Shown: positions 40,233 through 52,980 of the stretch, piece after piece
Layout: each line of letters begins with the position of its first letter
Position numbering within the stretch: the stretch's first letter is position 1
Origin: Haplodiscus bocki
Lineage: Eukaryota
Direction of reading: 5' to 3'
Assembly: GCA_965655095.1 (NCBI GenBank)
Contig: OZ296650.1
Location: 44,826,001 to 44,890,000 of the forward strand
Length of the DNA stretch: 64,000 nucleotides
Program-made: the position numbers and the translations under genes
Notes under the pieces: model-generated
Told to the model about the DNA's origin: nothing
What the model saw: only the letters and a program-made list of their open reading frames with translations
Databases searched by the model: none

Positions 40233-40941
40233 TTTAACAACCGTAATTTTATTGGAAAATTGGCAGCAAGAGTTTAGAGTTCTCATTTCTTTCAATATTT
40301 CGGATGCGAGGACGGTTGTTTGTGTTAGGTACTCTTTGGGATTGTTCTAAGAGAAAAATCTAGTTTTTGCTTTAAGACTGAATTTAACTTTAATATTTTA
40401 ACACAGTTCACTTACATTAATGATGATCAGAAGAATAGCAAAGTGTCCAGAGTTTTTCTTTCTTTTTTTCTTCTTTTTCAAGCAGCTTCTTCTCGTTTCG
40501 CTTCTGTGTTCCAATGATCGCTGATTTTTCTTTTTGTTGCTTTTTTTCTTGTTTCGAATTCACGATTATTCAAGTTTTTAAACAGGATAACAATTAACAG
40601 CAGAATGTTGGAGGATTCATGTTTTTAAGATAATTTACAAGTTTAGATTAACATGAAAGTTTATAAATTGAGGCCTGGTTATAAGTTTAGATGCGTATGA
40701 AAATCAACAAGTTAGGACTGGAATATAAGGTAACATATGAAAATGATAGTTTATGATAAGATATTTTGCCACTTCAAGTGTGAGTTTACTTTGCTAATTG
40801 AATACAAACTGAAACATGATTGTTTTAAAAGAGGCCTGTTTATGGGGCTGGGGGACGAAAGATGAAAATATTAATCTCAAGTGGATGACAAGTATTTGCT
40901 TGCAAGAGTTGTTCGTACAGGTTCATACAGGGGCCGCTACA
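40233..40941 (-). repeat. 3' LTR (709 bp)
   Basis: Only one mismatch to the 5' LTR seen by eye (g40659 vs c52698). Preceded by the PPT; AATAAA at 40253-40248. Confidence 0.96.
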
Positions 40942-40954
40942 ACTACTCCCCTTC
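40942..40954 (-). promoter_or_regulatory. Polypurine tract
   Basis: GAAGGGGAGTAGT directly before the TG of the 3' LTR. Confidence 0.8.
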
Positions 40955-40994
40955 GCAGGAAATTGCGTCCGCGCAATTGTAGGGAAGAGAAAAA

Positions 40995-42075
40995 TCAGGA
41001 TGTGGAGAAGAGCATGAATAATTGTGGGAATTCACAGCGGCCTTGCTTGGTAAAATTGTCATCAGCGTCTCGAGGGGTGCAACGGTAGCAACGAAGAGAA
41101 GAATCCAGGAGGCGACGGAATCCGAGAAGACCACAGTGGTCATACACTTTGCGAAGGCCAGGATGTGTTAACACACGTTTGATGTTGGTAAGGAGGGGAA
41201 CAAGACGAGAGGCAGCTACGGCGTGGTCGGTAGTGGGTGAAGCTTTGTCAGGGTGTAGGCAGCGTAGGAGTGTGTTGGCATGACGGACAAGTGTAGACAT
41301 ATCGGCGGAAGGGTTGCAGCAAAGAAAATGATAGAATGTGTCGTCCGGTGTGGCAGGGTCGTTAAAATCAGTGGGAAGAGATAAGAGATGATGTTGAATC
41401 ATAGAAGCCAACGCTTTGGTGTGGGAGCCGTCTAAGGAGGTGAGTTGAGTGCGGAGGGAACTAATTTCGTCAAGATGTCGGAGGGAATCAGCCATCAGGC
41501 TATTGTGAGTACGGTTTAAGTCAGCCAAGGAAGAACGGAGTTGTTGAGATTCAGCTGTGAGCTGTTCAATTTGCTTGCGGGCGGAGGCAGCAGCCAAATC
41601 TGCTTCAGTGTACATATCGTAAAATACTTCAGCCTCACGCCGGGCATCTTGGAAAGCCTTGTCCAGTTGGGTGACAGAAGAGAAGTCGGTAGTAATGGTG
41701 ACCCAATCATTGAGAGCGGTCTCTGTATCCATGTTGGCTTGGGTGGATGTATCCATGACGTCGGGGAGAACGGGAGGAGGCAAGGGTTCTGGGCAGAAAC
41801 AGTTTGTTGTGGGGAGGTCAGCGGAGGCAAAAGTTTCAGAAGTAGTGGGTGGAGGCAACCAGATTTGGCGGATTGAACGCTTAAAAGGACGGTCTCTCGA
41901 ATTGATCTTTTGTAAACAAACGGAATCACTGTCTGGGGACAACTTGGTGATGCGATATTGGATGTCCTCTACCAGATACACATGATCACCGACAGCGACA
42001 GGGTGGATGCGTCCAGAACTTATTAGCACAGGGTGGCGGCGGGCAGGGTGGGTGCTGAAGAAGTTGAAGTTAGAC
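40995..42075 (-). CDS. Accessory ORF: SH3/KOW-like N-terminus, coiled coil, DnaJ J-domain (HPD) and CxxC; predicted 360 aa after splicing
   Basis: Open frame with no in-frame ATG at its 5' end, preceded by a branch/polypyrimidine/acceptor run ctaaac...ttcttgatgtttcag|G. The C-terminal TFYHFLCCNPSADMSTLVRHANTLLRCLHPDK...VLTHPGLRKVYDHCG (41342-41130) is in register with the DnaJ consensus. Confidence 0.82.
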
Positions 42076-42174
42076 CTGAAACATCAAGAAGTGAGACAAA
42101 TACAGTTTAGGTAAAAAGTGACAAAAGGGAGAAGAAAAAAAGAAAAAGTGGAGGGGGGAAAAAGGGGAAGGTGG

Positions 42175-42366
42175 CATACGGAAACGTATGACGAGATGAG
42201 AAGGCGCCAATGGCAGCGGGACACGGAAACGTGTCTCAAGGTGTGAGGCGTGGGTGCGGTGCGTACCGCGAGCCCCAGGAAGGAGGCAGAGGCACGGAAA
42301 CATGCCGAAAACGCACACAATTGCAATAGCGGAAGGAATTGGAGAAATGAAACGCGGAAACGCGTT
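42175..42366 (-). other. Array of four 6-bp hairpins with identical UUUC loops
   Basis: Minus strand: AACGCG-TTTC-CGCGTT (42366-42351), GGCATG-TTTC-CGTGCC (42306-42291), GACACG-TTTC-CGTGTC (42235-42220), CATACG-TTTC-CGTATG (42190-42175). Confidence 0.85.
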
Positions 42367-42481
42367 AGAAGGCATCGCTCTGGATGGGAAGAGAATACAT
42401 AGGAACATATAGAGAAGGAATAGATACATAGATTTAGATACATGGAGAAATATATATAACATACGCGAAAAAGGAGGCAAG

Positions 42482-51197: not shown

Positions 51198-51566
51198 TCA
51201 AATTTGAGTTTTCTCACTTTTGAGGTACAGATTTGTCAAATATACTTCTATAAGGTGCAAGTTTTCTACCCACTTTCTAGCTAACCGGAAATAAAACAGT
51301 GATTTGGGATGTACTCTCGATAGTTGTTTCCTACTGGAAAGCTTTTCGACGACAATATTAGTACTATGTGCGGTATCGTGGATTTGCAACAAGGTTAAAT
51401 AAATTAGAGACAATTGAGGTGACAATTGACAGGCATGGGCAGAGTATTTCTCCAAATGTTGAAAGAGTCCGAACGATTCGACCTGACAGAAGAAACACGG
51501 GTATTGGGTGGGGGTATGCTGTGGGTCTAAGAGTTTGGCTTCTGATTTAAAGATGAAAGAATGCAT
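51198..51566 (-). CDS. Leader ORF 2: 122-aa putative zinc-binding protein
   Basis: ATG-initiated ORF before gag with YPCFFC-x9-H-x6-H-x-C, resembling a C2H2/C2HC finger. Confidence 0.55.
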   Translation of the reverse strand: MHSFIFKSEAKLLDPQHTPTQYPCFFCQVESFGLFQHLEKYSAHACQLSPQLSLIYLTLLQIHDTAHSTNIVVEKLSSRKQLSRVHPKSLFYFRLARKWVENLHLIEVYLTNLYLKSEKTQI

Positions 51567-51622
51567 CGAATGTTGGGATCAAAAAAAACAGTCGACTTCC
51601 ACTGTGGGCTGTTAGGAATTCT

Positions 51623-51874
51623 TCAGTTTGTTAGCGAAGTGGCTGTGCAACTGGATGCCACGTGATCTAATTGTATGCGCACGAGGACTAATCCTATCAC
51701 TATCAAAAAGAGGAGTGCTAGTACACAGAATGCGAAAAGCGCCCAAAGAAAAACAGAGCTGCTATCGTAGCGTAGTCTCCTGGAGTCGCTCCGTGAATAA
51801 CGGGGTGGGGGGTCAACGGGGTGGTTTGGGTTGAAAAAGTACAGGGGTAATTGATTAGTGTGGTTAGAGAACAT
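51623..51874 (-). CDS. Leader ORF 1: 83-aa single-pass membrane protein with PPxY motif
   Basis: ATG-initiated ORF between PBS and gag. DPPPRY is followed by a ~24-aa hydrophobic stretch VFLWALFAFCVLALLFLIVIGLVLV. Confidence 0.6.
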   Translation of the reverse strand: MFSNHTNQLPLYFFNPNHPVDPPPRYSRSDSRRLRYDSSSVFLWALFAFCVLALLFLIVIGLVLVRIQLDHVASSCTATSLTN

Positions 51875-52251
51875 TTAGATAATTTTGAAGAAGGAAAAAA
51901 TTTCTCTGGAAACAGGTCATTTTAATAAAAATTTGCGTTATTTATGAAATCAGTTGGAGAAAACAAGCTAAAGTTAGTATTGGAGGTTATCTACAAGTTA
52001 ATCATTTAAGGAAGAACTAAACTAACCGTTCTAAAGAGTGGTTCGTTTTACAAAATTCCAATTTCCTAATTGCCCGTGCTCATTTCAATTTTCCTACCTA
52101 TGGGCCTTAGCTGCCGTCTACGGTGGTTTTCGCTAGTAGAGCACAAACTAGCGTTAGCGCGGGACAAGTCCCGGGAAAGAGATCTTAAGGCAGTTTTTGG
52201 AAAGCTATGATCACGCTAGGTTAAGAAATTTTATCCTAATTTGCTTAAAAC

Positions 52252-52270
52252 AATCCCACTCCTGTCACCA
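52252..52270 (-). promoter_or_regulatory. Primer-binding site, probably tRNA-Leu
   Basis: TGGTGACAGGAGTGGGATT lies 1 nt after the 5' LTR. It is complementary to a tRNA 3' end AAUCCCACUCCUGUCACCA, 18/19 identical to the animal tRNA-Leu(CAG) 3' end (…AATCCCACTCCTGACACCA). Confidence 0.85.
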
Positions 52271-52271
52271 A

Positions 52272-52980
52272 TTTAACAACCGTAATTTTATTGGAAAATT
52301 GGCAGCAAGAGTTTAGAGTTCTCATTTCTTTCAATATTTCGGATGCGAGGACGGTTGTTTGTGTTAGGTACTCTTTGGGATTGTTCTAAGAGAAAAATCT
52401 AGTTTTTGCTTTAAGACTGAATTTAACTTTAATATTTTAACACAGTTCACTTACATTAATGATGATCAGAAGAATAGCAAAGTGTCCAGAGTTTTTCTTT
52501 CTTTTTTTCTTCTTTTTCAAGCAGCTTCTTCTCGTTTCGCTTCTGTGTTCCAATGATCGCTGATTTTTCTTTTTGTTGCTTTTTTTCTTGTTTCGAATTC
52601 ACGATTATTCAAGTTTTTAAACAGGATAACAATTAACAGCAGAATGTTGGAGGATTCATGTTTTTAAGATAATTTACAAGTTTAGATTAACATGAAACTT
52701 TATAAATTGAGGCCTGGTTATAAGTTTAGATGCGTATGAAAATCAACAAGTTAGGACTGGAATATAAGGTAACATATGAAAATGATAGTTTATGATAAGA
52801 TATTTTGCCACTTCAAGTGTGAGTTTACTTTGCTAATTGAATACAAACTGAAACATGATTGTTTTAAAAGAGGCCTGTTTATGGGGCTGGGGGACGAAAG
52901 ATGAAAATATTAATCTCAAGTGGATGACAAGTATTTGCTTGCAAGAGTTGTTCGTACAGGTTCATACAGGGGCCGCTACA
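52272..52980 (-). repeat. 5' LTR (709 bp)
   Basis: Direct repeat of 40233-40941. Reads TGTAGCGGCC...GTTGTTAAA on the minus strand. Candidate TATAAA 52704-52699, AATAAA 52292-52287; followed by the PBS. Confidence 0.96.
52449..52457 (-). promoter_or_regulatory. Putative major splice donor AAT|GTAAGT inside the 5' LTR
   Basis: Perfect GTAAGT donor at 52454, preceded by AT. Joining it to the G that follows the acceptors at 44852 or 42075 creates an in-frame ATG for env and for the J-domain ORF. Confidence 0.7.

Follow-up and report, generated by a model that had tools for sequence, protein, structure and literature searches.

Env-carrying Ty3/gypsy elements of metazoans ("errantiviruses", glycoprotein-F type; Chary and Hayashi, eLife 2026, PMC13524379) have the order LTR-gag-pol-env, an F-type fusion protein, a tRNA primer site, multiple near-identical young copies, and a variable "bridge" between RNase H and integrase; such elements are already known outside insects, and a 2012 review states that accessory genes were not shown for errantiviruses. 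Additional genes have been described in other retro-transcribing elements: fish epsilon-like endogenous retroviruses carry macro-domain ORFs (Basta et al. 2009, as cited in PMC4977317), and bdelloid rotifer LTR retrotransposons have captured extra enzymatic or membrane ORFs that are expressed from spliced messages (Rodriguez et al. 2017, PMC5408684). We identified, in a stretch of DNA of 64,000 nucleotides (the window), a full-length and recently inserted env-bearing Gypsy element that shares the errantivirus features listed above, but whose gene set, shared by a family of relatives, is larger than gag-pol-env (Table 1).

Table 1. Features of the element and their positions in the window.
Feature	Position	Strand	Description
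Complete element	40233..52980	-	12.7-kb LTR element
Target-site duplication, left copy	40229..40232	.	GAAT on the + strand
3' LTR	40233..40941	-	709 nt
Polypurine tract (PPT)	40942..40954	-	Purine-rich run directly upstream of the 3' LTR
J-protein gene	40995..42075	-	Exon 2 of the predicted spliced mRNA; 360 codons including the AUG built at the junction
J domain (DnaJ-like)	41139..41336	-	Contains the HPD motif
Predicted 3' splice site of the J mRNA	42075..42075	-	First exon base, a G in codon position 3, preceded by a pyrimidine tract and CAG
Array of four RNA hairpins	42175..42366	-	6-bp stem, UUUC loop; between env and the J acceptor
env	42482..44887	-	F-type class I fusion glycoprotein (predicted fold); 801 aa from its own ATG, 790 aa from the predicted splice-built AUG
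Predicted 3' splice site of the env mRNA	44852..44852	-	First exon base G, codon phase 2
pol open frame	44912..49771	-	1619 codons; protease, reverse transcriptase, RNase H, macrodomain, integrase
TARG1/OARD1-type macrodomain	46844..47248	-	Inside Pol, about aa 842-976
gag	49708..51123	-	471 aa; capsid-like domain and CCHC zinc knuckle
L2 leader ORF	51198..51566	-	122 aa
L1 leader ORF	51623..51874	-	83 aa; PPxY motif followed by a hydrophobic, transmembrane-like segment
Candidate primer-binding site (PBS)	52253..52270	-	Starts TGG, one base after the 5' LTR
5' LTR	52272..52980	-	709 nt; TATAAA at LTR position 277
Predicted major 5' splice site	52446..52457	-	Inside the LTR; reads AAT/GTAAGT, last exon base 52455
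Target-site duplication, right copy	52981..52984	.	GAAT

The two LTRs are identical at 708 of 709 positions, the same 4 bases directly flank both of them, and gag, pol, and env are all uninterrupted, which together support a recent insertion. Relatives at 30-97% protein identity were found in four public metagenome assemblies, and eight of these loci (L001 to L008) have the same gene order; two of them (L001 and L003) are equally young, and have the polypurine tract and a site similar to the candidate PBS at the same places, although the tRNA was not identified. Gag has Pfam matches (Retrotrans_gag and zf-CCHC), and the Pfam hits in pol are in the order given in Table 1. The pol frame is -1 relative to gag with an overlap of 64 nt, but no canonical slippery heptamer was found for the gag-pol shift, and how gag is translated behind two upstream ORFs is unexplained.

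The macrodomain lies between RNase H and integrase, and matches structures of human TARG1/OARD1 (PDB 2lgr, 2l8r, and 4j5q) at E-values of 6e-25 to 2e-24; its Pfam Macro score is 23.3 bits. The macro region is shared by 16 Pol relatives, in which the columns of the catalytic Lys84/Asp125 dyad (PMC9411070) read K in 15/16 and D in 14/16, and the window sequence keeps both residues. The predicted Env protein has a signal-like N-terminus, a furin-like site (RGKR at aa 172-175) followed by a Gly/Ala-rich hydrophobic fusion peptide, and a transmembrane segment at about aa 671-695. Although it has only a weak match to Baculo_F in Pfam, its predicted fold matches viral F proteins (210 matches at E <= 0.001), including those of paramyxoviruses and pneumoviruses, with a best E-value of 5e-8.

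The two leader ORFs differ in how widely they are conserved. L2 has homologues in all lineages whose 5' region was available: it is 50% identical to an ORF in L004 and 23-27% identical (E 3e-4 to 8e-6) to the ~130-aa upstream ORFs of L002 and L003, whereas the L005 ORF joins the family through those two and L004, and not by a direct hit to the L2 of the window. The ORFs of L002, L003, and L005 are 53-56% identical to each other. L1 is 96% identical in L001 and 42.5% identical to an 83-aa ORF at the same place in L004, with PPRY at the same position; it was found only in the lineages of the window element and L001 and of L004. Neither L1 nor L2 has a Pfam match.

The J-protein gene is at the same position in all nine loci (the window element and L001 to L008), where the ORF is 305-397 codons long, and it is open and full length in seven independent lineages at 30-65% identity, although synonymous sites are saturated. 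It belongs to a family of 61 proteins, with 29 invariant and 84 nearly invariant columns of 344, in which the H, P, and D columns are at least 90% conserved. The J domain excised from the window sequence scores 21 bits against Pfam DnaJ, below the cut-off of 27.8, but its homologues in L002, L003, and L005 score 30.8-40.4 bits and pass, and an alignment to DNAJC5 in PDB includes the HPD motif. The AlphaFold2 model suggests an N-terminal small beta-barrel, a long coiled coil, the J domain, and a Cys-containing tail, but it has only moderate confidence in the J domain, and fold matches for the N-terminal barrel are weak (none at E <= 0.001). Against the closest copy, dN/dS is 0.08-0.16 for gag, pol, env, the macrodomain (0.08), and J (0.08 against L001), indicating purifying selection. 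In L004, J decays together with the other genes, so it is part of the element.

Interestingly, the J ORF has no ATG before its conserved N-terminal domain. The preliminary description called this gene spliced; the ORF itself is continuous and needs no internal intron, and what the sequence and its relatives support is a splice that joins it to an upstream LTR exon. The 9-mer AAT/GTAAGT (the slash marks the junction) occurs once per LTR in the window element, L001, L003, and L004, and once downstream of J in L002, L006, L007, and L008, while the flanking sequence differs between lineages. A YAG/G acceptor in codon phase 2 precedes J in 8 of 9 loci (the window element, L001, L002, L003, L004, L006, L007, and L008); the exception, L005, has its own ATG directly after its AG. 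Similarly, a phase-2 YAG/G precedes env in 7 of 9 loci, and the env frames of L002 and L004 have no ATG in their first 50 codons. When we scanned the whole element for pyrimidine-tract AG/G sites that would give a splice-built ORF of 60 or more codons, only env and J were returned in the window. We therefore infer, with moderate confidence and without RNA data, that env and J are translated from spliced subgenomic RNAs sharing one donor inside the LTR: the exon ends in AT and the acceptors start with G, so that the AUG would be assembled across the junction. The promoter is likewise a prediction.

Of the four short hairpins between env and J, three have perfect stems and one has a U-G pair, and all four are kept in the minimum-energy fold (z = -3.7). 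Among 20 hairpins from 6 lineages, the 7-base core is invariant in 20/20, and 88.7% of stem cells are paired; there are 28 double-sided changes, and 0 of 500 shuffles reach the observed value. Since the inner four stem pairs were preselected by our search rule, the unbiased covariation rests mainly on pairs 5 and 6. Six stems carry U-G at one pair, which pairs only on the sense strand. L003 and L005 have a different repeated hairpin at the same place, including one compensatory change. Two overlapping small ORFs across the array (42073-42531 and 42087-42443) are not conserved as reading frames even in the 97% copy, and we treat them as spurious.

Overall, the locus is, with good confidence, a recently integrated copy of an env-carrying, errantivirus-like element of a multi-lineage family. 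The preliminary description had proposed a recently active, possibly infectious invertebrate retroelement with its own host-manipulation genes. Every feature it listed is present, and its interpretation is supported in that the accessory ORFs are not disrupted or lost in diverged family members; however, infectivity, an invertebrate host (the host is unidentified), and manipulation of the host by the extra genes are not established, and roles for the extra genes are inferred from domain identity only. The macrodomain may remove ADP-ribose from proteins or nucleic acids and so counter a host ADP-ribosylation defence, and the J domain may recruit host Hsp70. The UUUC hairpins may be sense-strand RNA sites for a protein; they lie in the predicted intron of the J mRNA and would remain only in genomic and env RNAs, which suits control of splicing, export, or packaging of intron-containing RNA.

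We considered whether the extra ORFs (L1, L2, and J) could be chance open frames or a one-off transduced host fragment, as might be suggested by the lack of Pfam matches for L1, L2, and the J N-terminal domain, by the low DnaJ score in the window, and by the narrow distribution of L1. This is very unlikely and already largely refuted, given the conservation of J and L2 and the low dN/dS of J; the two spurious ORFs over the hairpins, which lose their frame in the 97% copy, show what non-coding sequence looks like here. An assembly chimera, or a nested insertion of an unrelated gene-bearing element into an ordinary Gypsy element, would be in keeping with the G+C content of the element (42-49%), well above that of its flanks (34-37%), but is refuted by the independent copies; one pair of LTRs with a matching target duplication encloses everything, there are no internal repeats or second LTR pair, and the same order recurs on independent contigs from four assemblies, two of them with their own duplications.

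Two other alternatives appear unlikely. The J protein could be made without splicing, from an internal promoter in the env-J spacer (as spumaviruses may do for their accessory genes) with a non-AUG start or the first internal AUG, and the LTR 9-mer conserved for another reason; the hairpin array could be part of a promoter or enhancer, and in-frame internal ATGs exist in the window, the first at codon 110 of the open frame. However, the most conserved part of the protein lies upstream of that ATG, whose position is not conserved (codons 110, 46, 135, and 1); the Arg codon at the junction is AGG in all eight loci, preceded by pyrimidine-rich sequence; the one lineage without the AG/G has an ATG exactly there; and the donor exon ends in AT in all eight. 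It is also possible, though doubtful, that the UUUC motifs act as double-stranded DNA sites for a host transcription or insulator factor, like the Su(Hw) sites of gypsy, since arrays of short protein-binding repeats are known in errantivirus non-coding regions and the core is invariant, as a DNA site would be. But the outer stem changes sequence while staying complementary, which a DNA recognition site would not need; the T-G pair on the sense strand in six stems would be an A-C mismatch on the other strand; the loop orientation is always the same; and a different hairpin occupies the same place in L003 and L005.

We found no description of this gene set in the literature that could be searched, which did not extend to Repbase, Dfam, or GyDB. 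The main text of Chary and Hayashi (PMC13524379) does not mention a macrodomain, a J-domain gene, or accessory ORFs; here, the bridge holds a TARG1-type macrodomain, and there are three further conserved ORFs and a hairpin array. In the fish epsilon-like elements the macro domain is an additional ORF in a vertebrate retrovirus, whereas here it is fused into Pol of a Ty3/gypsy element and is of the TARG1 type. The ORFs of the bdelloid elements are GDSL lipase, DEDDy exonuclease, dUTPase, coiled-coil, and transmembrane ORFs, with no mention of Macro or DnaJ. Macrodomains of positive-strand RNA viruses (coronavirus Mac1, alphavirus nsP3) are also embedded in a replicase polyprotein, where they counter host PARP-mediated ADP-ribosylation (e.g., PMC6521996), but the closest solved relative of the present domain is cellular TARG1, with its Lys/Asp dyad, no viral macrodomain was returned by the PDB search, and this is a reverse-transcribing element. 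J domains with HPD that would engage host Hsp70 probably also occur in DNA viruses (polyomavirus T antigens), a different virus class with different flanking domains; no such protein was returned by our searches. Finally, the element looks like an invertebrate-style counterpart of the complex vertebrate retroviruses (delta-, spuma-, and epsilonretroviruses), which likewise appear to have an accessory gene between env and the 3' LTR, subgenomic mRNAs from one leader donor (predicted here), and a cis RNA element present only in incompletely spliced RNAs, the logic of Rev/RRE or Rex/RxRE. Its Pol domains, however, are of the Ty3/gypsy type (RT_RNaseH_2, Integrase_p58_C, Tf2-type SH3), and its accessory proteins are unrelated to any retroviral one; this is a resemblance in design, not membership.

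The element is a real, young and intact Ty3/gypsy (Metaviridae) LTR retrotransposon, lying on the minus strand (see the table of features for coordinates). Its two LTRs, in direct orientation, differ at one of 709 positions (708/709 identical), and both are flanked by a 4-bp GAAT target-site duplication. In sense orientation, the 5′ LTR is followed, after one base, by a candidate primer-binding site starting with TGG, and the 3′ LTR is preceded by a purine run; tRNA scans of the window and of five related loci, meant to identify the primer tRNA, found none. The G+C content of the element is 42-49%, against 34-37% in the flanks. 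No other copy or solo LTR was found in the window, and a search of Rfam at gathering thresholds over the whole window gave no match. Flanking open frames give only a FLYWCH/MULE transposase remnant (the element sits beside or inside a Mutator-like DNA transposon remnant) and a protein kinase frame that is probably an exon of a host gene, the only clear host coding sequence we saw.

Coordinates of features in and around the element, and of selected features in related loci
Sequence	Positions	Strand	Feature
window	31483-31920	-	146-aa open frame matching the protein kinase domain (E 9e-26)
window	36001-38000		very strong A-over-T skew (0.32) and positive G-over-C skew, unlike its neighbours
window	38728-40193	+	ORFs with FLYWCH zinc-finger (E 4e-4) and MULE transposase (E 8e-8) matches, ending 40 nt before the insertion site
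window	40233-40941	-	LTR
window	42073-42531		ORF rejected as a gene
window	42087-42443		ORF rejected as a gene
window	49711-51123	-	gag
window	51626-51874	-	L1 leader ORF
window	52272-52980	-	LTR
window	52455	-	predicted splice donor, last exon base
window	52988-53111		27-28-nt tandem repeat (3-3.6 copies), starting 8 nt after the insertion site
L002	8374-8772		L2-like ORF
L002	8769		gag start
L006	10297-10905		additional ORF between J and the 3′ LTR
L007	11387-11998		additional ORF between J and the 3′ LTR
L008	11231-11947		additional ORF between J and the 3′ LTR

The open frames comprise two leader ORFs, L1 (83 aa) and L2 (122 aa); gag (471 aa), with a capsid-like domain (Retrotrans_gag) and a CCHC knuckle (zf-CCHC); pol (1619 codons), in the -1 frame with a 64-nt overlap with gag; env (801 aa); and a J-domain frame (344 aa from a GTG, 362 codons stop to stop), which ends 56 nt before the 3′ LTR. 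Pfam gives Pol the order protease, RT, RNase H, Macro, integrase, with Ty3-type RT_RNaseH_2, Integrase_H2C2, rve and Integrase_p58_C. We found no canonical -1 slippery heptamer in the gag-pol overlap.

The stretch of Pol between RNase H and integrase matches human TARG1/OARD1 chains at E 6e-25 over about 135 residues (Pfam Macro, 23.3 bits against a cut-off of 22). The catalytic dyad of human TARG1 is Lys84/Asp125 (PMC9411070), and both columns are kept in the alignment, at Pol K910 and D951 (the one-residue numbering offset of the PDB chain was inferred from the position of the Asp). Sixteen Pol proteins from public assemblies share this region at 42-97% identity, and read K in 15/16 and D in 14/16 at those columns. 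A search for a close cellular donor found mostly Pol fragments and stand-alone, presumably cellular, proteins at only 35-42% identity; no recent capture is visible, and the fusion therefore appears to be old.

Env has a hydrophobic N-terminus and one furin-type site, RGKR (aa 172-175), followed directly by a Gly/Ala-rich hydrophobic peptide; a membrane anchor lies near residue 671-695, followed by a tail of about 105 residues. An exact look-up of this Env in public assemblies returned nothing on record, and a PDB sequence search gave nothing meaningful, but HMMER found 742 relatives in the representative library; among 17 relatives, R172 is nearly invariant (90% or more) and R175 is invariant. 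An AlphaFold2 model built on 17 of them (pLDDT 70.8) matches paramyxovirus and pneumovirus F proteins, including Nipah, Hendra and RSV F (best E 5e-8; 210 matches at E <= 0.001), although the TM-scores are low (0.18-0.42), so this is a fold-class match. The Pfam Baculo_F match is weak in the window (E 0.002) and reaches 5e-7 in a relative.

We read nine loci in all, counting the window; the eight others (L001-L008) are related loci from public assemblies. L001 is a 96-97% protein-identical copy; L001, L006, L007, and L008 come from one sample, L002 and L003 from a second, L004 from a third, and L005 from a fourth. All nine loci have gag, pol with macro, env, a structured spacer and the J ORF, in that order, and L001 and L003 have their own near-identical LTR pairs (99.85% and 99.86%) and 4-bp duplications. 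Counting frame changes (minimum counts), we found none in the four main genes of L001, L003, and L005; one in env of L002; one in gag, one in pol, three in env, and three in J of L004; two in gag of L006; three in pol of L007; and five in pol of L008. J decays together with the rest in L004, as expected for a part of the element, whereas in the two decayed copies L007 and L008 the J ORF is still full length, which may be chance, or J may outlast the rest. Interestingly, the sister lineages L006, L007, and L008 carry one more conserved ORF of about 200 aa between J and the 3′ LTR; the three copies are 50-63% identical to each other and have a strongly basic C-terminus, with no Pfam match and no counterpart in the window.

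Against L001, dN/dS is 0.16 for gag, 0.15 for pol, 0.16 for env, 0.08 for the macro region, and 0.08 for J (only 5 differences); L2 shows no replacement change and 2 synonymous differences, and the value for L1 (0.47, from 5 differences) is not informative. Divergence from this closest copy is mosaic along the element: the LTRs are 89.6% identical and dS is 0.12 in pol, but dS is only 0.016 in J and the env-J spacer is 98.8% identical, suggesting recombination between sublineages. Between diverged lineages the synonymous sites are saturated, so only the close pair gives dN/dS values; yet J stays open over 305-397 codons in seven lineages.

The family search with the J protein returned 61 proteins. 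In an alignment of 33 of them, 29 columns are invariant and 84 more are at least 90% conserved, including the H, P, and D of the J-domain motif, and HPD is present in the window. The homologues in L002, L003, and L005 pass the J-domain profile (40.4, 30.8, and 33.3 bits; cut-off 27.8), although the window itself scores only 21 bits. The AlphaFold2 model (pLDDT 68.6) shows a small N-terminal beta-barrel, a disordered linker, an 80-residue helix with pLDDT above 90, and then the J helices. A PDB profile search with the J family gave only coiled-coil noise and a weak DNAJC5 hit, and a fold search with the whole J model gave only weak small-barrel (KOW, Tudor, SH3-like) matches, none at E <= 0.001.

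Comparison of the loci also suggested how J and env may be expressed, which goes beyond the preliminary description, where a spliced J-domain gene before the 3′ LTR had been noted. In the window, the most conserved part of J lies upstream of the first in-frame ATG, whose position differs between lineages. At the start of the conserved region, eight loci have a pyrimidine tract, then YAG, then a G in codon position 3; and each of those eight also has the 9-mer AAT|GTAAGT, once per LTR or once downstream of J, in flanking sequence that is otherwise not conserved. In three LTRs this 9-mer lies about 220-250 nt after a TATAAA at a conserved position. Joining the exon end AT to the G gives an AUG in frame with J, and the predicted product in the window is 360 codons. 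L005 has neither feature in the sequence available, but carries an ATG immediately after its AG. The same phase-2 YAG|G precedes env in seven loci, and the env frames of L002 and L004 have no ATG in their first 50 codons. When we scanned the window's element for pyrimidine-tract AG|G sites that would give an ORF of at least 60 codons in this way, only env and J were found. This is comparative inference, the splice sites being predicted from conservation only and without transcript data. A start codon assembled by splicing would explain why automated annotation would miss or mis-start the J gene.

Between env and the J acceptor, the window has four hairpins of 6 bp with a UUUC loop, and the same motif occurs 2-5 times at the same place in L001, L002, L004, L006, L007, and L008. 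Within the elements the motif is confined to that spacer; the few other stem-forming hits lie in L003 pol, in the L006 J ORF and in flanking DNA. In an alignment of 20 hairpins, seven core columns are invariant, 88.7% of stem cells pair, and 28 cells carry changes on both sides, which no shuffle of 500 reaches. The four inner pairs were preselected by our search rule, but pairs 5 and 6 were not, and they pair in 19/19 and 16/19 distinct sequences, with 2 and 3 pair types. Six stems carry U-G at one position, which pairs only on the sense strand and argues for RNA rather than a double-stranded DNA site. The spacer folds better than all 100 shuffles (z = -3.7), and all four hairpins are present in the minimum-energy structure. 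L003 and L005 instead have a different repeated hairpin at the same position, with one compensatory change. In the splice model, the array lies in the intron of the J mRNA and is retained in genomic and env RNAs.

Neither leader ORF matches Pfam. L2 belongs to a family with members in every lineage whose 5′ region was available (23-56% identity; L004 has two copies). In L002 the L2-like ORF ends four bases after the gag start, an overlap of stop and start that hints at coupled translation of L2 and gag in that lineage; in the window the two are 74 nt apart. L1 has PPRY (a PPxY motif) followed by a hydrophobic, membrane-like segment, and is 42.5% identical to an ORF at the same place in L004, with the motif at the same position. 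Gag, in contrast, has no PTAP, PPxY, or YPxL motif in the window or in four relatives.

While the anatomy of the element and its conservation are seen directly, its mechanism is inferred. By analogy with TARG1 chemistry and with the macrodomains of RNA viruses, the macrodomain is inferred to remove ADP-ribose and to counter a host ADP-ribosylation defence; the J domain is inferred to engage host Hsp70; and the hairpin array is inferred to be a protein-binding RNA element that marks incompletely spliced RNAs. A bolder possibility, compatible with the data but doubtful at present, is that a lineage of env-bearing Ty3/gypsy elements has independently evolved a complex-retrovirus-like control circuit, in which a fully spliced mRNA gets its AUG from the splice itself and encodes a multimerising protein (small beta-barrel, long coiled coil, J domain) that binds the UUUC hairpin array, which survives only in the intron-containing genomic and env RNAs, in the manner of Rev and its response element, with Pol additionally carrying its own ADP-ribose-removing counter-defence. 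That the J protein itself binds the array is only a hypothesis.

Env-carrying Ty3/gypsy elements are widespread in metazoans, and the F-type Env found here is the one already described for them (PMC13524379); macro, DnaJ, and accessory genes are not mentioned in the main text of that paper. Macro-domain ORFs are reported in fish epsilon-like retroviruses, and rotifer LTR elements capture other ORF types. Our literature searches, which did not extend to Repbase, Dfam or GyDB, found nothing relevant that pairs a macrodomain or DnaJ with LTR retrotransposons, and we could not find this conserved gene set described. The TARG1-type macrodomain also points to ADP-ribosylation as a defence against retroelements in the host, a defence so far documented mainly against RNA viruses. 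Retroviruses with regulatory and accessory genes have been treated as a vertebrate speciality, and a 2012 review of errantiviruses states that such “upgrades” had not been shown for them; with its conserved accessory proteins, a host-derived enzyme domain fused into Pol, a structured RNA array and a shared, predicted splice design, this family would show that gene-set complexity arose more than once among reverse-transcribing elements. The Pol domain models hit are those of Ty3/gypsy elements and not of the Retroviridae type; the likeness to complex retroviruses is in gene layout only.
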